A stretch of DNA of 64,000 nucleotides from Orbicella franksi (Eukaryota): assembly GCA_964199315.1 (NCBI GenBank), contig OZ116699.1, positions 29,450,001 to 29,514,000 on the forward strand, given 5' to 3'. The notes under the pieces are model-generated. The model made no database searches. It was not told the DNA's origin and saw nothing but the letters and a program-made list of their open reading frames with translations. This document shows, in pieces, positions 39,501 through 61,400 of this stretch; the first letter of the stretch is position 1, and every line of letters starts with the position of its first letter. Made by a program: the position numbers and the translations under genes.

Positions 39501-42500
39501 GACTAAACTGTAAATTGTAAATTCTTCCTTCATCTCTCCTGTCCTTCAATTAGACAAAACTAAGCTGGAGGTTAACTCGAAAACCTAACGGTTAATTTAG
39601 CCTCCAGTCTCGTTAAAACAAGATTACAATCGTCACCTTATCTGCAACATGTTACATATAATAAAGATACCACAAATGTTTAATAATTATTCATATTTGT
39701 ATTCGTATCTTGTGCTAAAGATCATGATGTGTTTGATTCGCTGCCACTACAACTATACTTTACTCTGCGAATAGGAAGCTTAACACGACGTTCATTGATT
39801 TAAGAGTTTTCCGTTAATATGAAACCGCACTCTGTGCGAGTGCTTTCTTTACGAACGTTTTCACTCACGAGGGCAACAGCCAGGTAAGTTTATAGGGCCA
39901 AAGGAGAATGCTTACTTACGAAATGAGGTCAGCTCAACCGGGATTGGGTTGGGACGCGAACATGGCCGCCGCTTCGTTGTCTTGAGACACCGATGCGGCT
40001 GTCGTGACGTCATGTGAAAACAGGCTATAGTTGTTCTGGACTATTTATACTATCATTCAAAATGTCAAAAGCAGCCTGTTCGTCTCCCAAGAAAATAACC
40101 CGGAAATAAAATTTTCTCTCACGGTCAAAAATTTATAGAGTTTGCTTTTGCGTCTATCCTAATCTGTTTTGAAATATTTATTTGTAGAGATATTCGTCGT
40201 CCTATATTATGAGTCGGACAAGTACGTTATATTTTTAATTGAGGTGTTAGTGCGGCTTTGAGCTCTTGGGGCAAACATATGTTAAAATATAATTTAATAA
40301 AAAAAACATGCACTAACAACAACAGAGGCATGCAAAAACAAAATAAAATTACTTATGAATAACGCTGAATTCGAAATTATTAACTAGAAGCGCGCAAAGC
40401 GATGTGCAGCGTTTCTATTATTTTCTTAGTTCTGTCAAATTACCTTTCCCTACATCGGGTCCAACAACAACGAAAAATAATCATATTTGAATCAACTCAC
40501 GTCTGAAACGGATCCTCCTCGCTTTACCATAACGGCCTTTCCTGAATATTCGCACACGACGTCTGCCAACAAGCTTCACTCTAACTCGTCTACGTCGGAC
40601 GCGTATGCTGCAACGAACCCGGCGCCTGACGCGCATCCATCGCTTCTTTCGCCTTAGGTACCATACCTTTCTGCGTCGTCTGATTCGTATTCTTTTTCCT
40701 CCCACTTTGCAAATCAATCTGACACGTTTTACTTTCCTCCACTTTCGTCTTCTTTTCAGATACCACTTTCGACCGAATCTTCGAAGTCCGCACCATTTTC
40801 TTCTGATACGGACTCGCCATCGCCTCCCAAAGCGTTTTATTTTCCTGTATTTTCGCTTGATTAAAATCCTTAACCTTCGCCTGAACCTGCGGATAGGTTT
40901 CCTCTTTAGGCCGAAGAAGTATTTCCTTCTTATTTTCACACGGCGTCGTCTACCACGATATCGGATATACCTCGTACCTAGATAGACCAAGGATCATTTG
41001 AAACGATTAGTTTCTGGAGAAACTGTTGTTACCGTTCATAACCAGGTGAAACACATACTTAAGATTTATAAGAGTACATAACTGTTCGTATAAATTTGAA
41101 ATTCCGGGAACAAGCTAAGATCTTGTGTTTATACTTCAATCCCAAGAAATCTAAGAAAATTTCATTGTAGAATTGAGCATGGATTTGTTATTGTTGGAAA
41201 GTGCACAATCTTATCGTTAGCCAATATTTCTAGTTCTAACTAAGAAGAAGAGAAGAAGCACCTTCCTAAAACGTAATGGGATGAAGAAATGTTACGATAT
41301 TTGAATGAAATAGTCAGTCACTCGCTATACTTACGTCGCCTACGTCGTCTTCGATACCTTCGACCTGAACAGAAAAGACAGAGAAAAGAAAACATAAAGG
41401 CAAAGTTCTTTCAAACTTGCCTTTCCGAACTGAACCCCCACTTCTAGAATGTATACAGTTACACAAAATGATAAAACGTATTAATTTAATATCATGTACA
41501 GCGAAACCCCACGTTACAACAAGCACGTTAATACGAGCTAGTCGATAATACTGCAACTGTTTTCCTGTCTCTTACAAAGTGATACTCTACTCTAAATCAC
41601 TCGAGGAAAACAGTTAGTTTTGTTTTCCCAGCCGAATCTCGATGTTTACCGGGACGAAGTCGAGAGAAACTTTGAGATTCAAGGTAAAACAAAACTAATT
41701 TCCTCCGGACCAGTAATGAAGTGTCCTGTTATTACGCTAGAGGTTAGTGTAAAGTACGAAAGCAAAAAGAATAACCTCCAAGTCAGAGTAACCCTTGTTA
41801 AAAACGTTAAATGTTGAATGTCTATGGTGGTCGACGCGCTTAGCTATTTCAAATAAGCATAAAAGGCTTAAAAATCGCAACTGGCGGGAGGCAGACCAGT
41901 TAGCTATTTACAAGTATGACCGAGTAGTTGAACTAGGGTCTACCGAGAAACAACTCCAACTAAGTGGTCAGAGCGGGACTTGAACCTGCGACCTCCGGAT
42001 TTCAAGTCCGGCGCCCTAACCGCTCGGCCACGCGGGAGAGCTAGCGACAGTTGCTTACTCTCCCGCCGGGCAACCTCTCAATAAGACGCGCGTTTGATTC
42101 AACTAAACTTCAGCTATAATTTATAACAAATTAATTTCTGTACTCGAATCGCGGCTTTTCAACAGGACCATCAGGTTAATTGCCATCAATCTTCCAAAGC
42201 CCCAATTTTTAGGTACATTTAATACGACCGTTCGAAATTCCTCATCAGGTAATTAACAAAAGCAAATACTGTTGTGTTTATCGCCCTGAGAACAGCAGTC
42301 GATGGAAAGTTGGTGTCAAGACATCAATTAAAGGGATTTTTACAGGTGTCATAATTTGTACACCGTTGTTACCCCGTTAATACGACCACATGTTTATACC
42401 CTTTGTTTTTCGTCAGTCTGTTAAATTAACTCCACTCACGTCTGAAACGGATCCTCCTTGCTTTACCATAACGGCCTTTCCTGAATATTCGCACACGACG

Positions 42501-43423
42501 TCTGCCAACAAGCTTCACTCTAACTCGTCTACGTCGGACGCGTATGCTGCAACGAACCCGGCGCCTGACGCGCATCCATCGCTTCTTTCGCCTTAGGTAC
42601 CATACCTTTCTGCGCCGTCTGATTCGTATTCTTTTTCCTCCCACTTTGCAAATCAATCTGACACGTTTTACTTTCCTCCACTTTCGTCTTCTTTTCAGAT
42701 ACCACTTTCGACCGAATCTTCGAAGTCCGCACCATTTTCTTCTGATACGGACTCGCCATCGCCTCCCAAAGCGTTTTATTTTCCTGTATTTTCGCCTGAT
42801 TAAAATCCTTAACCTTCGCCTGAACCTACGGATAGGTTTCCTCTTTAGGCCGAAGAAGTATTTCCTTCTTATTTTTACAAGGCGTCGTCTACCACGGTAT
42901 CGGATATATCTCCTACCTGGATTAACCAAGAAAGCACTTTTTAATAACAATCATTCAAAATATTTAAATAGGAAAACAGCGACAATAAGAAGGTAGCAGC
43001 ATTCGCTGGATATGTTGTCTTATTTCAGTAAGTGAAAGGTAAGTTTCTAAATAAACAGATGTGCTGTGTCATCAGGCAGGTAAAATGCTGAATTAACAAA
43101 GCCTAAGTCAAATTCAACGGCAATCGGAATCTGATCACGAGGTCTTGTGTTTAAGGAAATTCAAAGAAAATATTATTTCAATTAACTTAAATCCAAATGA
43201 GGATAGGACAACTGTTGGTAAGAGAACATTTACAGTACAGTAAAATCCCGTGTGCGAGAACCTGCATGCTTTGAAGTCTGGCGAAATATAGGTTCTTGTA
43301 TTTTGCGGTAGTTATTGGAAATTTAGGATAAGTAGTTCTTAATTAGGTTCTTAATTAATTTATATGAAGGAGATATAGTTACGCATTGATTACCAGAATA
43401 ATGCTATACATGAACAATTACTC

Positions 43424-43456
<33 letters not shown>

Positions 43457-46400
43457 TGTAACACCAGTGCAAAAAGTGTAACACTAGTGCAAAGCGTGTA
43501 CCACCAGTGCAAATTACACATCGTAATTCTGGATTATGATTGCCTGGAATACAATAGGAAATTTTCTAAGCCAATGATATCACGTAAAATGATGACGAGA
43601 ATTTTGCGCGGAAACTTTGAGTTTGAGTTGAGTTTTTCAAAAAGCTGAAATTGCACTCGCCGAAGCGGATCGCGCAATTTCAGCTTTTTGAAAAATTCAC
43701 TCGTGCAAATTAATTCTAAATTGAATTCGAAACCGTATGATTACCTATACAAATACATTAACTTGGGTTTGGTCCTTGAATATACAGTATTTATTCGTAA
43801 CTGTATCATGGTTCCTCCGTGGCTTAAAATGTTCATGATAATTTATTTGTAACCCACATTCAAGAACCTGCTTGATCTTGCTTGGCTAAACAGGTTCTTA
43901 TATTTTTTGCGTATTAAAATGGCAAATTTCTGCCAGCAGGTTCTTAAACCGCTAGATTCTTACACGCGGGTTTTTACAACTTTCATCGATTGTAATTGTT
44001 GTTTGTGTTAAGGACATGGTCTACTTACGTTTTCCTCGTCTGCCACGCCTTCGACCTGAGATCAAATAAAGACAAGATTGTATAAGTCGAAAAACAAAAT
44101 ACTCAAACGAAACAAGATGTCCTTAGGAAACGAAGAAACCAAAAGAAAAAAAAACACGAGTATTTCCTGTCATTTTAACGCCATTTATCCCATCAATTGG
44201 GCAAATTAGACAATCCTGACGACCCTTTCATTTGCTCGACTTTAATTCGGTGGCCCACAGATGCTGGGTGACGAGTTTCTGTAGGAAACTACGAGCTCCA
44301 GTCAAGTAAAAAAGACCATATTCGTATTCTCGGTATTGGACTGGAACTAGCTTGCAATTGAGGCTCATGCGGGGGAATATCATTAAAACGAGGTTGATGT
44401 CATTTTGCATTTGAAAAGACTGCCCGCATTAGCCTCAGTTGCAAGCTAGTTCCAGTCCAATACCGAGAATACGAATATGGTCTACTGTCTGACACCGGCA
44501 AGGACGCAAATCATTGTGTACTTACGCCATCTTCGTCTTCGTCTTCTCCTTCGTCTCCTTCTTCGTCGTCTTCGTCGTCGACGCCGCCTTCGGCGTCTTC
44601 TTCTTCGCCTTCGACCTACAAAACATTAACGTAAATGAGGTTAAAGTTGTGAGTATGGAGCCCTACAAGGTTCGGTGAGTTAAGGTGTGACAGAAAGGTC
44701 ATATCTTTTATATATCACAATTAGATGCGTACGAAAAACACGGAAAAACAGCCAAAAATAAGACTTCAGGGTTGTCATAATGTACAGCGGAAATATGAAG
44801 TTAATAAATCGAAAAATAAGCTGGTAATGCTATTTTGTAATGATGACTTCGCAATGACCGACAACTGACAACTCACTGACAACTCGTGAAAAATCAGTTA
44901 GTGAAAATGACGAGCAAGCTACAAAAGGGATATGTTATATTCAATCTTTACTGAGACATCTCAAATCATGACCGTGCTACTAACTTCTTTACTACAGATT
45001 ACAATTCCGCTCTCTGCGAAATCGGTTATTGTCTCCTCACCTCGCAGGCGACGTTTTCTTCCATATCGCACACGCTTACTTCTCAGCCATTTTTGTCGGA
45101 ATCTAATCCGGTACCGTCTTCCATTTCTCTTTACTAAAAGTTTGCGTCCTCCATAACGCATGAAATAGACACGTCGACGTCTGACAGGGATCAATCTTTT
45201 ACGGAACCGCAAATATATCCTCTTACCGCGGCGTATCACGCTTGTCCATTTTCGGCGGAATCGTACCTGGTACTTGGAAGTTCTTGTGAAGACAGGCCAC
45301 CTTCGGCCGCGATAGATAACGCGGAACTTCCGGCCGTATCGTCTAATGCGAAGCCATGACCGACCGTATTTCAAGTACAAAATGCCACGCCTTCGTTTTA
45401 ATGGTCTCCATCCTCTGTTAAAGTACACTCGAGATCGTCCCCCACGTCTTCGGACGCGGTAGCGGCGTCTTCCGTATTTCACAGTCCATTGTCTTCTCCA
45501 TGCTCTCACGCGTCGGAGTTTACCGCGGAACCGGATTCTACGAACACGCCATCCTAGGAAGTGACGACAGCAATTTTGAACTGATGGGATTAGAGTTTTC
45601 CGAACGAGCAAGTGTTACTGTCCAGCTTAGAGAATAAAATAAAACTTAGGTATTGCCGTTTCCCATAACTACAAGGAACCTAGTTTGGCAAAAAGTACTT
45701 TAATTGCGTACACGGTCGCAAAATCTGAGGAAAAAAACTAAACGAACTGAATCGTGAGAATAGATGATCATTAGTTCACCAGCTGCTTCGTACCCAGGCA
45801 TTCCTCATAAGGGAAAACTGCAAAATACATGACTAAAAGAAGACGAGAAGGTTCGAGTTAGAGTCCTAAGTATTAACCGCTCCATGTGACTATCTAGAAT
45901 ACATGGTATGCATACTTTTTCGGTATCGTCTTCTTCGACGCCTTCTCCGTCTACGCCTTATTCGACGGCGTCTGCGTCGCCGTCTTCGACGTCGCCGTCT
46001 TCGTCTCCTGCTTTTTGTTATTCTCCTTCCTATAACCAAAAAGCTGTCAATAAATGCGGAAAATTCCAAACACAGTTACTTTACCCCTTCTTAATCGGTA
46101 CATATGTCTCCAAGGAAGCTGACATATCCCAGCTTTCATCTCTCCCTCTCTCTTGTTCTAAGAATGTCAACAACCCGTCAGGTTCCGCGAGATGAGTTTC
46201 TTATAAGATAACCTTCTAACTCCATAGTGGAAACCTTCGTTAGATTATTCTTATTTCTCTCCCTCTCTCTAGTTCTAAGAAGATCAACACCCTGTCAGGT
46301 TCCGCGAGATGAGGTTCTTGCAAGATAACCTACTAACTCCATAGTACAAACCCACGTTAGATTACTCTTATTTCTCTTCGTTTATCTTGTTCTAAGAAGA

Positions 46401-49400
46401 CCGACACTCCGTCAGGTTCCGCGAGATGAGGTTCTTACAACATAACCTACTAACTCCATAGTACAAATCTACGTTAGATTACTCTTATTTCTCTTCGTTT
46501 ATCTTGTTCTAAGAAGACCAACACTCCGTCACAAGATAACCTTCTAACTCCATAGTGGAAACCTTCGTTAGATTATTCTTATTTCTCTCCCTCTCTCTTG
46601 TTCTAAGAAGATCAACACCCTGTCAGGTTCCGCGAGATGAGGTTCTTGCAAGATAACCTACTAACTCCATAGTACAAACCCACGTTAGATTACTCTTATT
46701 TCTCTTCGTTTATCTTGTTCTAAGAAGACCGACACTCCGTCAGGTTCCGCGAGATGAGGTTCTTACAACATAACCTACTAACTCCATAGTACAAATCTAC
46801 GTTCGATTACTCTTATTTTTCTCCCTCTCTCTTGTTCTAAAAAGATCAACACCCTGTCAGGTTCCGCGAGACGAGGTTCTTACAAGGTAGTTAACCTAAT
46901 AACTCCATAGTACAAACCTACGTAAGATTACGCGTATTTCAAAGGATATAAGTTCTACTTACCTCGACGCCCTCTATAACGTCGACGTCGCCTTCTTAGT
47001 CGAACTACGAAAAAAACAACAATACCTCAGGACTTTACAAGCTAGCAAATACAAATACTTACGAAGGATAAATAAGAGGTTATAAAATTGTTACTGCGTT
47101 TCGAATTTCTAACAAGCAACGACGAAATACTACTGCCCCAAGGTCTTCCAGCATTGTCTCGAACCCATTTAGTTTGCTATAGGCCAGTCTTTCTCGACAG
47201 AGCTGTGATCTCATAGCTATTTTAGGAAACATTGTTGTTCAGCGATCTCTCACGATTAAACAGTAGACGAAAAAAAGGGAATTTAGGTGTACTGATGCAA
47301 GCTTTTCGCATAATTCTAACCTTGAGAAAATAATACTGGAACAATTGAGCAGTTTTGGTCTGGGCAAGGAGCTATGTAATTTCTGTAACGGCTTAATTTG
47401 CGCAGACAACCAACGGACAAAGAAATTTAATCACTTTATATTTAGAGAGGATATAACAAATGTCCATTTTAACACAGAAACTAGCCATCCTTACTAAAAA
47501 CGGAAAGCAAAAATTGAAGCATACAATGATGCTATAGCAGCCTATAAGAGCCTCAGCCTAAAGAAAAAATACTTCAATTATTTAAAAAAAGAGCGAAACT
47601 TTGAGGATTAATCAATCATTTTAAAAAAGAGCGGAACTTTGAGGATCAATCGTACCTTTGATCGGTCTGGAGATTGGTCTCCATCTTCTTCCGTACCTCA
47701 GTCTCCATTTTCCCCTCCTTCTCTTTAACCAGCGTCGCTTTCCTTTGTAGCGGACATAACGCCGGATCCTGCATCCCAATGGCCTCCATTTCCTCCTGAC
47801 GAACACCCGCCATTTCCCACGACGACGCACGATTCTTACACGGCGACGATTGAACACAACCTTCAGTGTAAACCGTGGAATGGTAATAAACCGTCTTGAT
47901 ATACGGACTTTCCAGTAACGGCCGATTCTACGTATCGGACGCCAAGCACCTCCGTAGAAGATGTATCGTCGTCTTCTTCTGAATTTTATTCTGACCCATC
48001 TGCGTCTGAAGTACAGAAGTAATCTTCGCCGCAGCTTGGGTATTCTGTACGAACGCTTTCCTATTTTAAACGACCATCTGCGAAGACGTCTTAACCGAAG
48101 TTTACGTCTTCTGAAGTAAACGAGCCGGCGTCGTCGACCTGCCGCAAAAGAGATCAATGCTATTCTTAAAAACAGACCGCAAGATAGAATTGAAGGGGCT
48201 TCAGGTTTCACTGATCGGTTGTATTCAATGAATGGATACTCTACCTAACAGTTCTTTTAGCCTGTAGGCTCCGACTTTGTTGATAATAATTACTTTCTAT
48301 CTATCGTATTAATCAACTTCTTATGTAATTACTATCTTCCATGCAAATATTTTTCTTCCTAGCCAATAAAGATTATTGTGATTGTGATTGTTATTCATAC
48401 ATTGTCTCAGCGTTAGACTGAAAACGTTTCAGGCAAGAACAGCTCAACACACATTACACTGGCCCTTCCCTAGTGAGGTCTTTTCGCATATGTTCTCGTC
48501 TCCCTCATCACAACAGCGAATATTCACTGGGACACAAAATGCAAAAACTAAGCTTTGCAAACAACAGAGCCGGAGATTATTATGGGACTGGGCATAACAC
48601 CTTTTTCCAAGTCAAACGTTTTTTAAGTGCTCACAGATAAATACTTACGCCGTGGGAACTTTCTTCTTCTTCTCCTTCCTTTTCGTCGGTAACGACCTGA
48701 AACAATAACGAAAAAAAATATCAACGGCATATCAGGCGAGTTTAGTCGAGCCATGCTTCGTATTTTCGCGAGACGTGGTCGAGCCAAACTATCCGTGGAT
48801 AGACCAAACGGGCCTGATATGTGAAGCGTACCGAAAAAGGTACGATTAGTTGTTTACCGAACCCAAATTCCGCCAAGTGACCATGATATCGTGGCCTATG
48901 AGGTCAGTGTATTGATATCGCAGGATGTCAGGATAGTAGACACGGCTTCTGACTGGCTGTTTCCGGAATTGGGTATGGTTAAAACAAATATCTCAGCAAG
49001 AAAAACGGCAAGCAGATCACCGCTCTCTTTGGTTTCTACAAGTCAAAAGGTAAACGCGATATGCTATAAAGTTCTCTTAATATAATAAAGAGCTTATCAT
49101 TATATTTTCAAGATACTTACGAAGTTTGATTTTCCTCCATCTATTTCCTAAACGAGCTTTCCATTTCCCACGTCTTCTCTTCAGCCAAACTCTCTTCTTT
49201 TTGTAAGTTACAAAACGTCGTATGCCACACATCATAGGCCTCCATCTTTTCTTAGTGAACAAACGCCATCTTCTGCGGACTCGCTTGATTTTCTTATAAC
49301 GGCGACCGATACGAATCCTGAGCCTTAAGCGTCCAAGGCGTCTCCAACGCTTCCCGTATCGGTATCTCCAAGAACGTCCTCGACGTCTTAAACGACACCA

Positions 49401-52400
49401 ACGTCTTCTTACACGGAGCTTCCACGTTTTACGTTTTCTTTTCACCCTTACATACTTCCTCTTGAAGCGTGCATATAAACGCCTTCTCATTCGGCGAATC
49501 CTGAAGACTTTTCCTTTGACTGTGGTCGTCCATATTCGGTATCTTCTGACGCGCCTTCTACGTCCACCGAGTTTGACGTATCGGCGCCGTCGACCTGCAG
49601 TGAGATTTTTTCAGAAAAAGAAAAGGTTTATAATCAAGAGGCCCGCCTTAAAATATACTGACGAAAGGAATTTGTTTCAGGAATGTAAATAATAATACCG
49701 TTCGTTCTGTAACCGTGCAAAGGGATCTATACGCCAAAAAGTACACAAATCTGGCTAAGAAACCTTCACTCAAAACTATTAAAAGAATAGTTTTAAACTG
49801 TGCGTTCCGCAATTTTAGGTCATTTTTCGGGTCAAATGCTCTATTTTTTCAAACGACATCTTCGACGACATCTGGCGTTTTTATGCCTTTCGGTTCGAGT
49901 CTACTTGAACTGGGTCATCCCGAAGAAAGCTAACCAATCAACATGTATACTGAGAACAGTGGACGGGTAGCTTTTTTTCGTGAAGGCAAATAACGGTCTC
50001 TTTGACTTGAAAACATAAAGTACTATTGATTCCTACTTTTGTGTGATATACACTCTACAGATTCAGTCCTAGACGGCGACCTCTCGTAATTATTAATTTC
50101 ACTCGAGAAATTTAGCTTGAAAACTCGTTTTGCGACAACTAAACCGAAACATTTCAAAATAGAAAAACCGTAGCCACGACAAAACATATTAAAAAGTTAT
50201 AAAAACGTTCACTGGCTCTATAAAGTTAAGACTTCCGAACTTTCGGTCGTCAGACTGCAGCCTGCCCTTCGATGGAAAAAAATAGAAAAAGTAACAACTA
50301 CCAACATGTTCAGAAATATGTCGGACCATAAAAGGTGGTTAACAAAAATGTTAAACCAAACTTGTAATTCCCTCACCTCTACCAAGTGGGATGCGAGCTG
50401 ATGCGTAACTTGGACCTCGTCTCTGTGGGCGACTCATGTATCTGATCCAATATGGTCTTCTACGACCAACATACCCGATCGCGGCAAGACTGCTTCTGAA
50501 GCTCAGTCTTATTCTTCGTGGATCGATGTGCAGCCTTTTGAGCACATATTTGTAGTATCTACCAAACCGATACGCCTCGTCTTGGATTGCAAGTACAACA
50601 ATACACCTACAATTGCCAGAAAATGTTAGCATAAAGAAAAATGAAACTGAGACTATTGCATTACATCAAATGAGGTCGGATTTTCATAAATTGTATCGGA
50701 TAAGGGTGATATTCTAGCTAGTTGTAGCTGTGTCTACAACAGGAACTTGAAACACTTAACAATCCCATGATGACGTATTTCCTAAGATTTTGTACAAACA
50801 AAAACAACAGCACAATTTATTTACCCCATTAGTAAGTAGTTTATAAATACAATTATTTCAACTGGTTTTTTGAAAAATTAAAAGATTATCAGCTCCCTGA
50901 GTAGAAATTGAACGTGTAATCTGTGATGAAATGGGGCTACGAGAAGACGTGAAGGCTGCCATGCGGTACTGAAACCGCGAAGGAAAGCTTGGTGGAAATC
51001 CTGAAAATCCAGCTTGCTGAAAACCAGGATTGAATTTCATTGCCTTATGAATTTAGCCTTGATGTTGGATGTGATGAATAAGAACCAGTGGTGCTCGTTG
51101 GCGTTGGACGTCTTGGCCTGCAAGCGGTTGATTTGAGGCTTCATTTGCACTGGTTTGGTTGGAGGCGTCGTTTGGAGTGTTTTCGTTTTGCACTTCTTAT
51201 ATCCACTGATAATGTGAGGCAGCTCTTTCCTTTGATTATCGTCTATTTCATCGTAGTCGTCTAACGAAGATTCGTGCATGGACTGTTATTTCACAGATGA
51301 CATTGTGCGGTTGACCAGAATTCTCCACTTGTGACACCAATGTTTTCCTCATGCTGTGGTTCGAGAACTTCTTATTTGTCTTGAGACAGGAGGCCATAGA
51401 TTTCGTGGTATTGCTGATGGTGTTTTGTCCCATGCGAACTTTGGTGTATTAGACATCTGTTGACTGAGGACGATTTATGACGCTCAGATAGAGAGGCCCT
51501 GTGTCCTTCATTCCCTGGGATCGCTTGCACAATCAAAGCTTGAAGAGCCACACTGGATCGGTTTTTCCGCCGTCGGTGGTATACATAACTTGTGGCGTAG
51601 TTCTTCGCCTGATAGACAGATCGCCGCTTCTTGTTTTGGTTGGACCTTCGCGGAACTCTACGACTTCAGTGCAATCTTCTTGTTGTCCTATCACAAGGTC
51701 CTCCACGTACACGTCGTGGTGTTCCTGGCTACCTCTAAGCCAAGTTGTTCAGTCAAGTTTTTAAAGTTCACATTGGTCAGTACCCTTCCATTGAAATACC
51801 CTAGCTGACCTTTCTCCGACAGAGCCGATTCCTCTTCTGGTGTTAATGGCTGTGCATAGTTTGGTCCCTTACCCTTTCCTTGCTGGCGCAGAGAAAGTCC
51901 CTTCGCATTGAGGATTTCTTGTGAGTTATGGACCCCTCTCGATCGCACGATACTCACTGGATAGCTTTGGTCCTTTAGCTGACGTTCAATTGTTCTTTGC
52001 ATGATTTTCTGCGATTGAGGCTCGTAATCATGTCCGTCCCTTTCTTCTACTTCGGCGTAGAACTTTGCCAGGACCGTGTTTCTTCAAAATCTATACCGAA
52101 AGTTGGAAACGACTACCGGAAAAGTTGATTTTCAACCTGGAGGGGCTGGTCATCATCATTTAGAAACCGTAAGTAATTAAATTTATCCATTTTTCAAACT
52201 TAGCAAAGTCTTGGCCACAAAAGTTGCGAAATTTGCCCAATAATGGCTTTTTTGTCTTTCATTTTCCTACAATGTGATTGGTTAGTTTTAAAAAGCCTTA
52301 AAATCTGATTGGTTGTTTTGTTTTAGCGTTCCACTCTCAATGGCCAGAAACAAGATGCGATTTAGAGTACAAAATAGCGCGATTCGGGAATAAATCGCCC

Positions 52401-55400
52401 TGCTGAGAACGAATCAAATTTCAAGGATAACCAGTGATTTTAAAATGGATATAATAAAAGATGTAATCAAACTGGGACTGTGAAAATAAATTTTATCATC
52501 AGAAATCAACAGCTAAAAGTGGTGAAAACAAACTTACCCTCGTCTGATGCGGTAAATAAATCTCTTGAACCTCTTTGCCTGATAACGGCTGCCATGTGTG
52601 TCAAAAGACCTCCTTTGTACAACACGCCCTATTGCAGTAAAAACATCAGCAATAAGATTTAAAGAAAAACACGACAGGACAGTCTATATCATCATTGATA
52701 TAATCTAGACCATTGATAATTAGCTTGCGAATTCAAGAGGCTAGAATCGAAAACCACAGCATAAGGGTGACACCACACATCTAAGTACAAAGATACAAAT
52801 AGTTTTTGAGGTCATGCTACTCTTGGTACATTGAGGGCTCACCAGTGTTGCGGTCGATAACACAAACGTCAAAACCACGCTTGGGCAGAGAATCTCTTTC
52901 GAAGCGTACCAAAAAGGTAGGAATAGCTTTATTAACTATAAGTCCTTACCCGTCCGGCGGTTGATAACGATAGAATTAAAACCACGCCTACGCAGAGAAT
53001 AATCTCTTCTGAAGCGTACTAGAAACGTAGGAATAGCTTTAACAACTATAAGTCCTTACCTGTCCTGCGCTTGATAACGATAACGTTAAAACCACGCCTG
53101 TGTAGAGAATAATCTCTTCCGTTGACTCTGATGTAGGCCCGCGAGCGTCCATACAAAGTACGTCCGCGCTTCTTATCAACAAAACCTTGACTTTCCACTC
53201 TCACTCTTACATATCCTGTACATAATAACAAAAAGAAGCACGTTTATGCGGAAGTCGAAACTCGAAGATATTCTGATCTCTCAACTTTCCAAATGTATTT
53301 TAAGAGAAACTTGGTATAAAGAGGAAACTTACTTAAATATGACAGTGGCTTCCCTCGAAATATCTGATTACTAACTTATTCCCGACAGCCGAGTATTTGG
53401 TGAAAAAAAATGTTGTAAAAAAATGTTAGCAATTTTAACAGTCTTAGACGGCGACTTACCATAATTATAAATGTCACTCTGTCACTTTTTTCATTTTTAT
53501 CCATCGAAGGCTGTAGTCTGACAGCCGAAAGCTCGAAAGTTTTAACTTTATTTAGCCAATGAATTTTAATGTAAACCGAAACCGTTGAAAAGAGTACAAA
53601 ATTTAGGATCGAAACTAACCAATCAACAAATGGCAAAGTTTCCTGAGAGGTCTGCGAAAGTACACGCTTTCGTGTTTTTTTTTTCTTTCTTTTGTTCTGT
53701 TATAGAGCGATTGTTTTTATTCTTTAATGCTACAGCGATCTTTAAAGAAAGATCGCTATCCTTGTACTCAAGTAACGTTCTGATTGGTTTTCTCTTTACC
53801 AAGCGGCCCGTTTGAGTAGTTGCACTGCAATACCCGATGATAAGCTGCCTATAGACAGGGTCAAAATGATATTGTTTTGATTTGAAGTTTTGAAGAAGAG
53901 CATAACGTCTGCGCAGTTTCGCGGTCATCATAGGTAGCAAAACCAATAGAAACAATTCTTTTTTTTTTATGCTATTGAATGTCATTATTTGAATTTTTCA
54001 AAACAATGCGTCCATGTTTAAATAACTATCGTTCCTCTACACTTGAGAATTAATTTTTTGCTATGGGGATATTGGAAAAATGTAATTGACACCATTTTCC
54101 AATCAGTGTCTCTGATTACACTTACAGTACTAAATAGGACGATTTGTAATACTGAAAGATTCCATATTTAGGGAAACATCTTTATCGTTGTTTTGCTTTA
54201 TGAGTATCTTACCCACTCAAAGTAGGAGTTTTAGAAATCAGTTTGTGCCTCATGAAAACTCTACTTTTTGCTTACGAAATCATAAGTTCCAATCGTTCAA
54301 AGCTCTTATTCGCCTTACTAATCGCGATACATATCTTTTAATGTCAGTTGTAAGAATTTGTTCTAACATGGAGACAATATCTCGTTATTCCTGTCATCAA
54401 TCGGCATAACATTTACTGATATTGCAAGGAGAATATGGATGTTTCTCATTCAAGATATTTGGAGGTGTTTGGGGATCATGGTAGTAAGTACATACCTCTT
54501 CGCCGTCGCATTCCCCATCGCCTTCGACGTCTTCCTCGCCAGCGTCGTCTTCCACCTCTTCTACGTCGTCGTCGTCGTCGTCGTCTTCGTCGTCTTCTTC
54601 TGCGTCGTCGTCTCCTTGCTCGTCTTCTTCTCCTTCTTCGTATTCGTCTTCTACGCCTTCTCGCTGCAAAATAAATGCCCAGGTCTGTTACGACCTTTTT
54701 AGAAGTCGTAACAGCGATTATGCTCACAACTTTCAGGGTAAATGAAATCATATTAAACCTGAGAATTGGAACTAAGTTAGAATTGTCCCACACTCAACTG
54801 GCTGAGGGATCTACATTGTAGCTCAACGCACTAGTCGAAGAAAAAGTATGAATCCGGCATCATGAGCGCGAAAACGCATCCAAGCAAAATCACACTTTAA
54901 TTTGGTTTCACTGGATCCTAACTGATTTGAAGACAATTATTTGGTAATTGATTGGCTTAGGGGACAGTGTCTCTTCCTAATTTCCATATTATTGCCAATC
55001 ACCACAACATATACAAATAAATCGGATATAAAGATTCTGCCAAGCCAATGAAAATTGCCATTCTGTTGAAATTTCACATTTTTCAATTTATTATTAGGAA
55101 TATTAAATGTAGAAATGACAGAAAATTGTAGAAAACTCGGCAATAAAATCCGAGTTCCATCCAGATGGGATTCGAACCCACGACCCTCCGTGATCTAGCC
55201 GGACGCTCTAACCACTGAGCTACTGGAGACTCTATGGTGAGCAAGGGTGAAATGTGGGTCTTTGACTGGAACCGCATCGCGCAGTCACACAGCCAAAGAA
55301 TGACAGGTATTTACCAAGGGTCTTTTTTTTCTTTTTAGTTGATATTTTTTTGCCTTCATTATTCTTTCATTTCGAAGATAATGAAGTAACTTTATAGCAA

Positions 55401-58400
55401 GCTGCCAGCCAAACTTATTAAATTACGATTTCTGTAAGCCTGTTTCACGGATATTTTTAGACGATTGTAAGGCTACGCAAACGCTAAACCATACAAACAG
55501 AGGACGGTTGCTTTTGGAACTCAACCAACTCAGCCCTTCAAGTGATGTTATTTTAACTGTTCACTTACACATTCGACGCGGTCTTCTCGTTTTTATTTTC
55601 CTTCTGCGAGTCCAGTGGCCATGGTATCTTACCCGGACCGTCCTTCGCCTTCTCCTTACTCGCAGGAAACGACCGTGATATCTTATGCGATATTTTCGGC
55701 GACGAATAACCGGCTTCCACTTGCGCCCTAGCATCATGTACAGCCGTCTCTTCATCATCATCATACGCGCCCAGACTCGTCTGAACTTAATCATCAACAG
55801 ATTCGCCTTGACTCGCAGACGTTGCAACCGTCGTCGATATTTTAAATACCAGCGACCTCTACGCTTCACAATAGGTTTCCATTTGCTTCCAAACCGGATG
55901 AACCAACTTCCGCGTTGTTTTTTAGCTCGACGCCATCGTTTCATGTAGTATATTTTCACATGTCGCCCGTTTCTGTTTAGTTTGTATCTCTTTCTGTGAA
56001 TCGTCAGGTACCATGTTCTCCCTCCTTTTCTCAAGCGTCGGTAACGTCCTTTGAAATAGACTCTTTTGCTAGCTGATTGAGTGAAAGACAAGTGATATCA
56101 AGTAAGACAACGATACTGCCGCTAGTACCGTCAGCTGCTAAATCCTCTACTGCTTTATCGCAATTTCGGAAATTAAATAATCAGTCTGACTTAGCAGGCT
56201 CCCAGTACAATTGCTGCAGTATTTTAGCAGCGTTAAGGGACGTATGCACAAAATATCAACATAATATTTATTATACCTAGATAAATTAGACGTAGTAGAT
56301 ATCATTATAACATATTCTCACTTTTGATGTATTATTTTTAAGCCTTTTGTATTTTTTAAATTTGTTTGTGTTGACTAATTTTATCATGAGCGTTTGGCTC
56401 GAATGAATAGGCAACTACCCCGTGTCACGACTTTAAATAAATTATTACTATTACTACTGGGTGAGTCTATTAATTCCCATGTACATATCTTAGTCAAACA
56501 TTGGCTAAACCTCGAATGCTCTTGTTACAAGAGTTTATATTATTCAGCATTAACTGCTCTGGAATCTTAAAATAATGGGTTGAGAAGATAAATCATTTTA
56601 ATTGTGACAATTAACACAATTGCGTCAAAAAATAATTGGGCCATTAGTATTGTTTGAAAAAGCCTTTGCTTCACTTAATGATTGACTTTCGGTTTAAAGG
56701 TACTTTATCCTGCCCCTGTTCATAATGTATAGCTCACAATAAATACTATTGTTTGCTCTGTTTGCTGAGAAGGGCTTTGACAAGGAATCAACAAACTCTC
56801 TAATTCTTCGGGTTGACTTTAGCTATGTGGCTGGCCACATCGCCGCTTTAATAATCATTTCAATCCAGTGTCAATTATAAACGAATGAAGGAAGCCCTAC
56901 TCAACAAAGTTGAGGGTAAAAATCCTCATCTCATAGACAAAGGTATATGTGGCTAGGATAAGGGTGGGGGGGGGGGGGGATGGGGAAAACAAAGTAGGAG
57001 ACGATCCCTCTATGCGGTCAAGTCCAAAACCACATGGCATGGATACACCGCCTAGAGGGTTCCCAGAATGTTCCAATATGTTGCAAACCCTATCCCCCAC
57101 CCACCCCTAGCCAACATAGCTGGTTAAGTTTAAACATTAACAGAGGGCAGCATAATTTTCATTAATGTTCATTGTCTGGACAATAAATAATTTAACCAAC
57201 ACTCTAAATTCAAGTGATTGGTTCAGTTCTTCGTCATGGCAAAAGATCATCGGCTCCTCAAATATCATGAACTGGTCGTTTAAATTTGATAACAAAAGAA
57301 AATAAGGAAATTATCACCACAGGGAATTACAAAAACACTTACGTCTTCGTCGACGAAGTATTCTCCTTCGTCTTCTTCTTCGTCGCCTCACTCGACGAGC
57401 TGAAGAGGTTTATTTTTGACAAAAACATATATATGAGAAAGTGAAATATTAAAATGACGGGAGCAATGAATGCCAGGGTTTCCATCTCAGTAACATTGTC
57501 ATTATGAGATATCAAGTAAATTAAAGAACTCATAATACCAAAACTAGACATTATTGAGTTTGCCGAAAAAATACAACAAAAAGCGACCCCCAGTATGAAA
57601 GCTTATAATTTTAAAAGAGGAAAACTTCTTTGAATAAACCTGTGGTTCTGTTTTAAAGAAAAATAAAAAGTACTGTTAGTCGACGTTTCGATGCATCAAA
57701 CTCAACTCAACAACTTTGACTTCAGCATTAACGACCTCAATCTTGAGAATGATGCTTGATGCATCGAAACCTCGATTGTCATTGCTTTTAAACTTTCTTG
57801 TCAAATGCTTTAACAAGCAACTCATCATTCATTGTGTTTTTAGACATGGAAATGCGAGGACCCGCTCACAACCAGCACTACTGTTTTTCGGCTTTTAACG
57901 TTACGGCCGTATTTGGTTAGGTCAGGGTTTAAAATATTTCTTTTGAAATGAAGTATTCGTATCTGTTTTTGCATATAACCTTTTTACAAAACAGATGTTT
58001 CGGTTGCAAAACTATTGTTAGGCATACTAGTATCTTGATGGTCCAGTTGGATACCTTCATCTTTTTCAAAAGAAGGGGGATAAACCTTCAATATATTAGA
58101 AAACGAACTCTTAAAGCAGAATACCTCTGTAAAAGCGAATGCTGTAATTGTTTTCAGTATTATTTCATGTCTAGCTAAACGCTGTCGCTTTCTCTTGAAT
58201 TACGTGACATTTTTAGGCCTTTTTACAGTACGTAACATTTAAATAAAATACGTACGTCTCCGTCTTCGTCTTCTTCTACGTCGCCGTCGTCCTCTTCNNN
58301 NNNNNNNNNNNNNNNNNNNNNNNNNNNNNNNNNNNNNNNNNNNNNNNNNNNNNNNNNNNNNNNNNNNNNNNNNNNNNNNNNNNNNNNNNNNNNNNNNNNN

Positions 58401-61400
58401 NNNNNNNNNNNNNNNNNNNNNNNNNNNNNNNNNNNNNNNNNNNNNNNNNNNNNNNNNNNNNNNNNNNNNNNNNNNNNNNNNNNNNNNNNNNNNNCTTCTC
58501 ACTCGCCGCCTCTTCCTTCTCGTTCTTCTCCTCCTCGCTGTGATAAAAATGACACCAAAGTGACATTTCATAACATAAGCCGCGCAAATTTTCGGGAACT
58601 TACACCTGGTGAGAACACTGAGGATGCTGGCGGCAATTTATTTTTCAGACGGAATCTTTGTGTAACTTTGGTGATTTCACCAAAAAGAGATAAGGGAAAT
58701 GTACTTTGTACTTTTTTTTCAAACAAGAAGAAAACGTAGAGGTAACAACAGACCACTGGCAATCAAAAAAGCGAATTCACAGCCGTAAACCAGATCAGAT
58801 TGTCCTTTTTTTAGGAAATGACGGCAAGGTTTTGTATGTTGACATCCTTTCAGAAAACACCCTATAAGAAAGCGAATGCTCAATCCTGTACTTCTATTAA
58901 ACAATTAGATTATGAGCTCGAGATTTACGAGGGTGCAGACTATAGCACTATTCTGAAACTTTCATTACATCTTATATGTGGATATCAGTGTGATAAAGCC
59001 GTGACTTAAAAGTCAAATGAACCAAAATTTAGACATCTTATCTTCAGCCATTTTGTAGCGAAATGTTTAAAAAAAAAACATGTAAAAAGGAGCTTATGCG
59101 GAAATTTTTTCTTTCTGAAACGTGAAAAGGAGTAAAAAAGTTAAAAGTACGAAGACAGCGGATGGCTTCACGAAAACGTTTCCAAAATGACCGCGCACTT
59201 TAATGGAAGGAATGGAACTGAGACTCTGCTTTGTGACGTCACTGTTGTCTTGAACATTGCTGCGTTTCTGCGTCAGTGAGTCTTTCGTGGGGAAGGTTTT
59301 GGATCTAAATACAAGCCTTATTTTACTCTAGAAATGGCCGAGGCTTTCGCCCGCTTTCGGCAGGCATTATTCGCTTGTTTTTTGTTGCCGGCTTGCAACG
59401 TTTCATAGTGAAGTTAAAAATCGTCGGTACCGCGTCTTTCTTGACTACAAGTTGACGAAGCTTGAAAGAGGGTCCCAACAAACTCCTTACTACAAGATTT
59501 TGCTCAAAGCTGTCTTTGGTAAAGTGTTTTACACAAACGTGCGCATGTTTCGAGGGCACGAAGCATTCTCTTTTCATTTTGATAAGCCATTAATTATCTC
59601 TTAAGTTTTGGGTCCTGGGGGAACTTGAAAGTGTTAACTTTTGATTTTGAGTGGTTTTCCTCTGAAGTTCACTGTGAACTTCAAACCAAAACAGTTTCAA
59701 ATTTCCCGCATTTCTTGAGCTCACCAATAGTGACGTCACAAGTTTTATTTCCAACAATTATCCGACAATTTTCCCGAGCACTCTACGATTATGAAGAATA
59801 AAAAACAATGATTTTAACATTCCAATATCTCCGCAATGCTTCGTCCAATTCGTTTGAAACTTCAGAATATGTTTATTTCATACTCAATGAACACATTGAA
59901 TTCAAATGAAAAAAAAAATGTCTAAGTTTTGGTTCATTTGACCTTTAAAATGATACCTGTGAAGTGATATGATATCATTTCACTGCAGCGAAATGATATC
60001 ATACCACTTCGCGGTTGAATTGTCCAATCAAATAGACTGTAATAAACTGGTTGGACCAATCAGGTAGCAAGTTATATTTTAGCTGGCGCCAAATTTGGCG
60101 GGAAGAATTTCTCTGCAGTTTTATCCGCGAAATGGCCGCTTCAAGATTTGTGAGCGTTTCCTGTGAAGATATATCTCAGTTTCTCGAAGAGAACGAAAAC
60201 AAGAACACGGCAAGAAAAACCTCTCAAGATGTAGCGTTCTTCAAGACCTTTTGACCGAATGAGAACGCAAATTTACAGGACCATTGTAAGAGAAAGATAC
60301 GCTTCAGCTTGCCCTCTTTCTTGTATGTATTCACTGATATTAAAGGCAACTTTCTTGTACTTTAACTTGGTGGCTTGATATTTTTTAAGCATGTAATATG
60401 CTTACTCGCTCGAAGACTCGCTCGTTCGCGATATGGTATTACAAACGCGTGAACAAAAACGATACCAGGCTCTTAATATGTATTGTTACATGGCTTAAGT
60501 TTGTAACCGATATAACGCGCTCTCCGATTGGCTAGTTCTAGGGCATTATTCCCCCGTAATGCCCACGGGCCGATTACGGGCCTGCAAAACCAAAGCAAAA
60601 CGCCATATAATAAACAACTTATTAACCTCGAACGTTTGGTATTTGCGGGAAAATCTCAAACCTCGCCCTTGCAGTATTAATCTCGCTATTGCTCGGTCAA
60701 TTCGGCAAGGTCTCGATTTGAAACTTTGCTGTAAAGACCTCAATCTCGGATAATAAGGAGTTAAAAATCTATATTTATCTTACCTCTTTTGGGTCTACCG
60801 TATCGACCTCGATATCGCACTCTGAAACGTCTACCTTTCCTCTTTACCACCAATCGCTTACTGCGGTATCGGATGGTATACCGGGGACGTCGTTTCACGC
60901 GCAACCAGCGTCGTTTAAAGTAGATAGAGTATCTTCGTCCAATACACTTAAACGGTCGCCACTTCCCTCGGAAACGGATTCTGAAAGTGCGCGAAGTCCT
61001 AGGCAGGCGGATGTAACGTTTGTTTCTGCGTATCGTCCACTGCCGTCCGCGGCGATAGATACGTTGCCATGTTCCAATGTAGACATACCAGATGTTTCGG
61101 ATACGTTTCAGGGGTCTAAATCTTCCACCATACTTGATCCTCATTCTTCTTCCACCTCGGCGGATTCTGTATCTTATTCCTTTCACTTTAATAACAAATC
61201 GACTCCTCCAACGTCTTAAAACACGTACGCGTCCCTTGAAACGGATTCCTCTTCGTCTCCAGCCTAACAAAAACAACCACGAGTAGATGAAATGATGATT
61301 GTGCAATGGCAAAACATTCGCGTTCCATATTCTTCAACGAGACCATATTATCATCGACATTACTTTCCAGATCTACACTGTCACTTGTTGCTTCGTTTTT

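Follow-up and report, generated by a model that had tools for sequence, protein, structure and literature searches.

Exons, phases and splicing of the E9-E11 module

The window (the whole 64,000-nucleotide stretch of Orbicella franksi DNA analysed here) carries on its minus strand part of a gene whose exons are extraordinarily rich in arginine codons. Among these exons lie three, E9, E10, and E11, that sequence comparisons identify as encoding a domain of the ILEI/GG type. E9 (53060..53215, minus strand, 156 nt; phase 1 in, phase 1 out) specifies the N-terminal strands (V-x-V-E-S-Q-G ... I-R-V-N-G-R-D-Y-S) and an R-R-G-F-N-V-I-V motif, and its product can be aligned with the N-terminal regions of Clytia and canonical ILEI proteins. 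E10 (52538..52628, minus, 91 nt; phase 1 in, phase 2 out) supplies an S-F-D-T-H-G motif followed by a helix, and E11 (50377..50606, minus, 230 nt; phase 2 in, phase 1 out) the C-terminal 60% of the domain, with I-V-V-L-A-I-Q-D-E-A, F-R-S-S-L-A-A-I-G-Y-V-G, W, G-P, and I-P. Together the three make up 477 nt, or 159 codons in frame with internal junctions in phases 1 and 2, and all of the introns around them are of the AG/GT type. The coordinates, codon number, and phases given in the earlier note were exact.

RNA data place this module within an arginine-rich mRNA. Upstream of E9 is a poly-Arg exon, E8 (54496..54663, minus, phase 1-1; donor 54496 established by RNA, acceptor 54663 by sequence only), whose approximately 55 codons are nearly all Arg and which is spliced straight onto E9 with a continuous frame. 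Downstream, E11 is joined to an Arg-rich repeat exon of about 157 codons, E12 (49121..49594, minus, phase 1-1; acceptor 49594 by RNA), and the RNA contigs break at 49119. The four junctions (54496>53215, 53060>52628, 52538>50606, and 50377>49594) are each present in 2 to 8 raw polyA reads of run X24, the Logan contigs of run X2 contain all four again, and those of run X1 contain three; the three runs come from separate studies. No junction skipping any of E9-E11 was reported in the reads and contigs of these runs, and the module is part of the Arg-rich transcript, as proposed, rather than of a separate one. Expression differs among RNA samples, one polyA run having zero reads on the exons.

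Across the spliced E8-E12 sequence the Arg frame contains no stops, and the other two frames contain 15 to 18. The poly-Arg exons also have an acidic frame, which was considered and rejected: it does not agree in phase with the confirmed junctions, and it is closed once the RNA is spliced. Intron 9 contains, at 52838..53059 (minus), two extra tandem copies, about 110 bp each, in which the 3' end of E9 and its donor site are repeated; a repeat search finds three units, spaced 110 bp apart and 71-85% identical. The two intronic copies translate to RDYSLRRRGFNSIVINRRTG and SLPKRGFDVCVIDRNTG, and in the RNA they are spliced over, 53060>52628 being the sole junction seen. A search of metagenome contigs for the spliced E9/E10 junction gave 0 matches.

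An ILEI/GG domain resurfaced with arginine

The assignment of E9-E11 to a genuine ILEI/GG-type domain, within the fold family of FAM3, the POMGnT1 stem, and TMEM2/CEMIP, bears out the identity first proposed and is based on several kinds of sequence match. As single-exon queries, E10 and E11 match the Pfam ILEI profile (PF15711) with 13.3 bits (profile positions 15-39) and 14.7 bits (positions 44-89), each below the curated cut-off of 27 bits; the two matches are collinear with the profile, sum roughly to 28 bits, and are accompanied by no match to another family. The corresponding exons of a paralogous copy (copy A, below) score 14.4 bits for E10 and 26.6 bits for E11 (E=8.4e-6). When the spliced 158-residue peptide was compared by phmmer with 430 ORFs from the Pfam-positive ILEI loci of the genome, the best match was a canonical ILEI ORF of the same genome (41.6 bits, E=3e-12), and 11 of the 13 matches listed were ILEI-bearing ORFs. 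Against the PDB, a profile of the E11 type finds TMEM2 best (8C6I, E=2.9e-5, both GG domains of the chain) and also the POMGnT1 stem (5GGJ, E=6.2e-4) and the structures of FAM3A (7ECQ), FAM3B (2YOP), and FAM3C (5LC2). With FAM3/ILEI proteins the coral domain shares the collinear motifs R-G-x-N-V, F-D-T, a hydrophobic strand with Q/D-D-E, L-x-x-L-G, F-R-x-S-x-x-x-x-G, W, G-P, and I-P. Canonical ILEI genes of the genome have the same E11 exon boundary, and their matches likewise begin at query position 2.

E11 is 35-46% identical to relatives of normal composition, namely a Clytia protein and coral ILEI-CUB-discoidin genes. The nearest of these, Clytia hemisphaerica XP_066923126.1 (source name "ILEI/PANDER domain-containing protein"; Pfam ILEI, 124.8 bits), and the normal coral genes fall in the same subfamily and share an N-terminal extension, V-x-S-E/Q-G ... 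I-x-V-N-G-x-D-Y-S. Unlike the coral domain, these ordinary extracellular proteins are 6-9% Arg, have conserved pairs of Cys, and begin with a signal-peptide-like sequence.

The composition of E9-E11 is extreme. Its 158 complete codons include 37 Arg, 7 Lys, 5 Asp, 2 Glu, and 1 Cys, giving 23% Arg and a net charge of +37, whereas normal relatives have 3-9% Arg and charges of -4 to +11, and FAM3 proteins are near-neutral. The seven acidic residues noted earlier were counted correctly; that they lie mostly in family motifs was borne out for four of the seven (the Asp of DKK, that of FDT, and both acidic residues of QDE). The basic residues are not spread evenly over the domain. In conserved hydrophobic columns 25 of 29 positions are still hydrophobic and none has turned to Arg or Lys, and in 23 of 31 near-invariant columns the residue is that of the consensus of normal relatives, while Arg or Lys occupies 29 of 79 variable columns. 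Five copies of the domain (A to E, below) all have 20-23% Arg and a net charge of +32 to +37, even copy A, which lies at dS>2. The charge persists through a turnover of positions: copies A and E have 34 basic positions in common, and a further 9 are found only in A and 10 only in E. The asymmetry and the shared charge support the earlier suggestion that charge is selected even on a folded domain. Purifying selection maintains the hydrophobic core and the family signature residues, the variable, presumably surface, positions are now given over to Arg and Lys, and the domain probably still folds.

A similar pattern is known from engineered "supercharged" proteins such as +36 GFP, in which the surface is made basic and the core is kept; protamines are natural polycations. 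The coral domain resembles both in its extreme charge density and in basic replacement of the surface around a retained core. It differs from the engineered proteins in that its supercharging arose naturally, is conserved among its paralogues, and affects a lectin-type fold, and from protamines in that the coral protein is giant and has folded domains. A natural, conserved, and apparently folded domain at about +37 net charge bears on the evolutionary limits of surface supercharging.

Five copies at the locus of a giant arginine-rich gene

The earlier note described a single ILEI domain. The locus instead holds five intact paralogous copies, four of them 10-40 kb upstream of the window. In all five the frame is open and the splice sites are conserved. 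The dN/dS ratio is 0.32-0.47 among copies B-E and 0.15-0.17 when these are compared with copy A. In our gene model, the five copies lie in the 5' half of one gene of about 100 kb, with some 60 exons and about 9,000 codons; the product is estimated at ~9,000 residues, with ~45% Arg and, outside the ILEI domains, <0.5% Asp+Glu. The ILEI module and its neighbouring exons are symmetric, in phase 1-1. FAM3 proteins, in contrast, are small, secreted, and single-domain. Arg-rich exons lying still further upstream (window coordinates 108124-113380) were rejected as part of the same gene, since each locus ends in its own conserved non-basic tail exon and stop; the stop of the upstream paralogous gene is at ~107538 in the same coordinates.

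Could such exons be transcribed without translation, or be decaying, so that the likeness to ILEI is a relic? No annotated giant protein or public model of the coral gene appears among the E11 matches in 1.84 billion representatives, where HMMER returned the Clytia protein and short proteins, those examined being single-exon ORF calls. Against a relic stand the single open frame over five spliced exons, the run of about 59 Arg-rich open blocks along the gene, the five intact copies with dN/dS below 0.5, and the conservation of the family in other coral assemblies. A relic is accordingly a very improbable explanation.

The Arg-rich repeats themselves belong to no known domain that we could recognise: eleven Arg-rich exon ORFs or pieces gave no Pfam family, and assignment of the repeats to a known domain was rejected. 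One Arg-rich exon, modelled with AlphaFold2 (pLDDT 84), is predicted to form a meander of about 16 beta strands. Searches of the PDB, the AFDB clusters, and the ESM Atlas with this model gave no convincing structural neighbour, and a feature-based Atlas search was likewise empty. A single AFDB match to this model (E=2.4e-5) is to an uncharacterised protein of 889 residues. A literature search on Arg-rich, polycationic, or ILEI proteins in corals, cnidarians, and nematocysts returned nothing relevant. TMEM2/CEMIP, a cell-surface hyaluronidase, offers a partial parallel in that it, too, carries a GG domain within a very large protein, is extracellular, and handles a polyanionic glycan. It differs in its other domains: neither G8 nor PbH1 domains were found in the eleven coral Arg-rich exon ORFs scanned, and the repeats that accompany the domain in the coral protein are Arg-rich beta-hairpins, for which no neighbouring fold is known.

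Proposed site of action and putative ligands

Secretion of the giant protein is plausible, a case that rests on the habit of the ILEI family, on extracellular relatives, and on the symmetric phase 1-1 exons. To our knowledge, every characterised ILEI/GG domain is luminal or extracellular. Clytia XP_066923126.1 has a signal-peptide-like N-terminus (as read by eye), relatives of normal composition adjoin CUB, F5/8C, EGF, and Sushi exons, and the homologous Arg-rich gene of another coral assembly keeps the N-terminal, disulfide-type Cys pair of the domain. Each of these observations, together with the exon phases, speaks against the alternative that the protein is an intracellular polycation (nuclear, nucleolar, or of sperm chromatin) or a binder of RNA or polyphosphate, with its ILEI domains co-opted outside the secretory pathway. 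That alternative draws on the 45% Arg with long poly-Arg runs and on uneven expression, including the polyA run that lacks exon reads. Poly-Arg tracts would also serve as nuclear or nucleolar targeting signals, as well as furin sites, which counts against the glycan-anchor explanation given below. It draws as well on the N-terminus. The first coding exon is bounded by the upstream paralogue's stop at ~107538 and the acceptor at 95640 (window coordinates), and a signal peptide search of this interval gave candidates only: three possible start exons with Met, a hydrophobic stretch, and a phase-1 donor, the best at 96768-96684, of which no second copy was found in the genome. Lastly, the cysteines of some ILEI relatives are lost from E9-E11 and from all five domains. 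This loss is weak counter-evidence, because a canonical ILEI of the same genome is also nearly Cys-free. On balance, an intracellular polycation seems unlikely.

The POMGnT1 stem is a GlcNAc-binding GG-type module, whose sugar is contacted by R129, D179, and R207 (PMC9802357). Aligned with these residues in the coral domain are the Arg of R-R-G-F-N, the Asp of Q-D-E, and the Arg of F-R-S-S, and a sequence-level comparison finds equivalents of the triad in all five copies, in addition to the profile match. Two residues of the triad are Arg, and in a domain that is 23% Arg the conservation of these two says little. Unlike POMGnT1, the coral domain, whose sugar binding is predicted, has no nearby glycosyltransferase domain or transmembrane anchor. 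Glycan anchoring by the domain is nonetheless plausible. The best overall explanation, to which we assign a probability of about one half, is that E9-E11 is an expressed, Arg-resurfaced ILEI/GG domain, one of five that would act as putative glycan anchors of an extracellular polycation. A folded domain with the R/D/R triad would most likely recognise carbohydrate of the GlcNAc/Man type; five such anchors together could tether the polycation to a glycan-bearing matrix, and the Arg-rich beta-hairpin repeats and poly-Arg linkers would bind polyanions without specificity.

A competing explanation is that the domains fold without being lectins. They would act as structural spacers, mediate protein-protein contacts, or be a mere inheritance from an ancestral extracellular mosaic gene, kept solely because their loss would upset the folding or processing of the protein. 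The ligands of ILEI/FAM3 members are diverse and poorly understood (PMC9802357), which favours this explanation, as do the only moderate constraint among the recent copies (dN/dS 0.3-0.5), the lost cysteines, and the uninformative Arg at the triad positions. Opposed to it are the QDE aspartate and the FDT motif, which belong to the handful of acidic residues allowed in ~9,000, and the maintenance of five copies, one of them at dS>2. We regard non-lectin domains as somewhat unlikely, and prefer the putative glycan anchors.

A wider and more speculative proposal, which we consider rather doubtful, extends the glycan-anchor reading to stony corals in general. The extracellular polycations of these animals would be giant proteins whose ordinary lectin and adhesion folds have been naturally supercharged with arginine; in the present gene the five ILEI/GG modules would serve as sugar-specific multivalent anchors, with acidic partners, such as sulfated mucus glycans, acid-rich skeletal matrix proteins, or microbial surfaces, condensed by the Arg-rich hairpin arrays and the poly-Arg linkers. 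If true, such a protein would be a so-far unseen cationic counterpart in the biology of the coral matrix and barrier.

Since the ILEI modules are the sole recognisable ligand-type domains in an otherwise featureless protein, they provide the best clue to its site of action (extracellular, on glycans) and the best test reagent. They also offer a way to find a giant Arg-rich protein that proteomics would otherwise easily miss. Because trypsin shreds the Arg-rich bulk, ILEI-derived peptides are the realistic handle in mucus, skeleton, and tissue proteomes: the nine repeat exons examined yield 1 usable tryptic peptide per ~150 residues, and the ILEI domain yields 7 peptides of at least 7 residues in 158.

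Exons E9-E11 in the transcript

The minus strand of the window, from a 497 Mb stony-coral genome, carries a long run of open blocks that are 30-50% Arg and almost devoid of Asp and Glu. Within this run lie three exons of ordinary complexity, each with an AG acceptor and a GT donor: E9 (53215-53060, 156 nt), E10 (52628-52538, 91 nt) and E11 (50606-50377, 230 nt). The phases of the exon model in the earlier note, 1 / 1 / 2 / 1, do give the 159 joined codons it reported. Two raw polyA runs and two RNA contig sets were aligned to 49000-54999, and three of the four runs contain splice joints, every one with minus-strand GT..AG ends. The joints connect the poly-Arg exon E8 to E9 (54496>53215), E9 to E10 (53060>52628), E10 to E11 (52538>50606), and E11 to the Arg-rich exon E12 (50377>49594). 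All four are present in the raw reads of run X24 (2-8 reads each). The X2 contigs also contain all four and the X1 contigs three, and each run comes from a separate study. Over the same interval run X22 gave no exon reads, and no joint skipping from E8 to E12 is reported among the aligned runs.

When E8-E12 are concatenated, a single stop-free frame encodes poly-Arg, then the ILEI-like peptide, then Arg-rich repeats; the remaining two frames are interrupted by 15 and 18 stops. The joints and the single open frame tie the ILEI exons to the polycation and remove the earlier worry that E9-E11 could be skipped or come from another transcript. Read in the +1 frame, the poly-Arg DNA (AGA/CGA runs) gives long open frames rich in Asp and Glu, 45-96 codons in length, at 54400-54687 and in most poly-Arg exons. 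At E8-E12 such an acidic alternative reading is excluded, because only the Arg frame is free of stops; at E8 the acidic frame is also out of phase with the confirmed joints.

The introns have features of their own. At 52838-53110, the last ~60 nt of E9 and its donor are triplicated in tandem (~110 bp units, 71-85% identity). The two extra copies, in intron 9, retain GT donors and are left out of the RNA observed, and the third copy is less Arg-rich (…KRGFDVCVIDRNTG…). On the minus strand, intron 10 holds an open frame of 130 codons with ordinary composition (51694-52083), low RNA contig coverage and no Pfam match, which may be a transposon remnant. RNA coverage is very deep over a short repeat with copies at 50000-50150 (intron 11) and 53572-53650 (intron 8), where there are also many loose ends and some non-canonical "joints" spanning ~3.4 kb; the pattern resembles a dispersed repeat that is highly transcribed, not splicing of this gene. 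N runs at 34921-35055 and 58298-58494 lie within the gene's introns or in the flanks of its exons.

An arginine-rich member of the ILEI/GG family

Pfam scans were run exon by exon, and ILEI (PF15711, cut-off 27 bits) is the sole family matched by the three exons, each scanned alone. E10 (13.3 bits, profile positions 15-39) and E11 (14.7 bits, positions 44-89) match collinearly, with a rough sum over the separate exon scans of ~28 bits against the cut-off of 27. In an upstream paralogue, copy A, E11 alone scores 26.6 bits (E=8.4e-6) and E10 14.4 bits. The spliced 158-residue peptide was also searched against 430 ORFs drawn from this genome's twelve best Pfam-ILEI loci. ILEI-bearing ORFs account for 11 of the 13 matches listed, and the best (41.6 bits, E=3e-12) aligns from R-R-G-F-N through I-P. 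At E<0.05, a profile built from 18 E11-type sequences matched six solved proteins, covering TMEM2 (both GG domains), the POMGnT1 stem, FAM3B and FAM3C; FAM3A matched less well, at E=0.12. Among proteins of normal composition the closest is one from Clytia, labelled "ILEI/PANDER domain-containing" by its source; it has two tandem domains (Pfam ILEI 124.8 bits), and even the N-terminal extension that E9 encodes is present in it. On these comparisons the ILEI/GG assignment made in the earlier note is well supported.

Judged by sequence, then, the domain is a member of the ILEI/GG superfamily, but it differs from every described member found in its net charge of about +35, its lack of cysteines, and its occurrence five times over in a giant protein of Arg-rich repeats. 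Among the papers in the library searched, none describes a protein of this kind, and a protein database search found no annotated model of this gene's product.

Of the 158 residues, 37 are Arg, 7 Lys, 5 Asp and 2 Glu, for a net charge of +37, whereas normal relatives have 3-9% Arg and a net charge of -4 to +11; the arginine enrichment noted previously holds against these relatives. Alignment columns were classed by conservation among five normal relatives. The window copy is identical at 23 of 31 near-invariant columns and still hydrophobic at 25 of 29 conserved hydrophobic columns, none of which has become Arg or Lys (0/29). At variable columns, Arg or Lys occupies 29 of 79, whereas Arg in the relatives is ~7%. 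The family motifs D-K-K, F-D-T and Q-D-E account for four of the seven acidic residues, and the D of D-K-K aligns with that of the relatives. Outside the ILEI modules, the Arg-rich blocks of the gene (~8,500 residues) include only ~40 acidic residues, so that the five domains carry about half of those in the modelled protein.

Five copies, modelled within one of two tandem genes

Although a single ILEI domain had been described, exactly five Arg-rich copies emerged when the flanks were searched tblastn-style and the whole genome with E11, all of them on one strand of this locus. Relative to the window's own minus-strand copy E (E9-E11, the 100% reference), and in window coordinates, these are A (~92248-89174, E11 60% identical), B (~85328-82567, 91%), C (~81643-80301, 81%) and D (~75874-74241, 87%). 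All five frames are open, and their introns agree in position and phase; one donor in copy A is GC. The dN/dS ratio is 0.32-0.47 among copies B-E and 0.15-0.17 against copy A, at dS>2. Every copy has a net charge of +32 to +37. A and E have 34 basic positions in common, with 9 more found only in A and 10 only in E, so that total charge looks to be conserved while positions turn over. That this is a real, expressed and selected ILEI/GG domain, resurfaced with arginine, is the firm part of the analysis and very probably correct. The next best genomic matches to E11 are ordinary ILEI exons (37-42% identity) that start at the same query position, which suggests that the copies derive from a normal ILEI gene with several exons.

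The Arg-rich exon series spans ~95640 down to ~-3820. It is followed by a conserved, non-basic tail exon (-4888 to -5115), rich in Pro, Ser, Thr and acidic residues, with a stop at its end. An upstream tandem paralogue has the same kind of tail exon (107933-107538, stop at ~107538), and this terminal type is present genome-wide in these two genes only. Since each ends with its own conserved tail exon and stop, the sequence is read as two tandem genes, not one. The tail exon (…VYDSPPTAADQET…) is the only acidic-rich exon in the gene model.

The ~59 Arg-rich blocks total ~8,500 residues with 44.5% Arg, 9% Lys and 0.47% Asp+Glu, values that are approximate because exon ends are mostly modelled. 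Exons of the 5' part are symmetric phase 1-1, and so is the ILEI module as a whole; those of the 3' part appear to be phase 2-2. A Pfam scan of eleven ORFs from the Arg-rich exons matched no family. AlphaFold2, given one such exon (45042-45551) with paralogous exons as the alignment, returned a meander of ~16 short beta strands (pLDDT 84). The model had no convincing fold neighbours in PDB, AFDB or Atlas, its only AFDB match being A0A3M6UD74, an uncharacterised protein of 889 residues. The phase 1-1 Arg-rich exons, ~160-170 codons each, consist of roughly nine 18-residue hairpin units (hydrophobic-x-hydrophobic-R-hydrophobic, G-R-x-W). Two adjacent exons, 42441-42914 and 40502-40975, are almost identical, and several exons that lie upstream of the window, at 87657, 86048, 76622 and 69931, are likewise near-copies; this near-identity indicates recent segmental duplication within the gene.

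Location of the product and sugar binding

The characterised ILEI/GG domains are, as far as is known, luminal or extracellular. Several arguments would place the present protein outside the cell as well: this family habit, the N-terminus of the Clytia relative, which is signal-peptide-like by eye, the CUB, discoidin, EGF and Sushi exons that come after ILEI in coral relatives of normal composition, the 1-1 phase, and an N-terminal Cys pair kept in a homologous Arg-rich gene of another coral (ENA assembly ERZ25073755). Three candidate first exons, each Met-plus-hydrophobic with a phase-1 donor, lie in a 12-kb upstream interval, the best at 96768-96684. The absence of cysteines from copies A-E counts against an extracellular location, but at least one canonical ILEI of the same genome is also nearly without them.

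In the POMGnT1 stem, GlcNAc is contacted by R129, D179 and R207, which are kept in FAM3 proteins that likewise bind sugars (PMC9802357). All five copies have the equivalents: the R of R-R-G-F-N, the D of Q-D-E, and the R of F-R-S-S. Conservation of the aspartate is informative for sugar binding; that of the two arginines is less so, because the domain is Arg-rich in composition. The best reading, at about even odds, is that the ILEI copies would form a multivalent anchor that binds carbohydrate and sits on an extracellular polycation.

The gene of the other coral has at least three ILEI modules, whose Arg content is slightly lower. One Arg-rich open frame in it runs uninterrupted for 457 codons, which suggests that introns found in the window gene are absent there.
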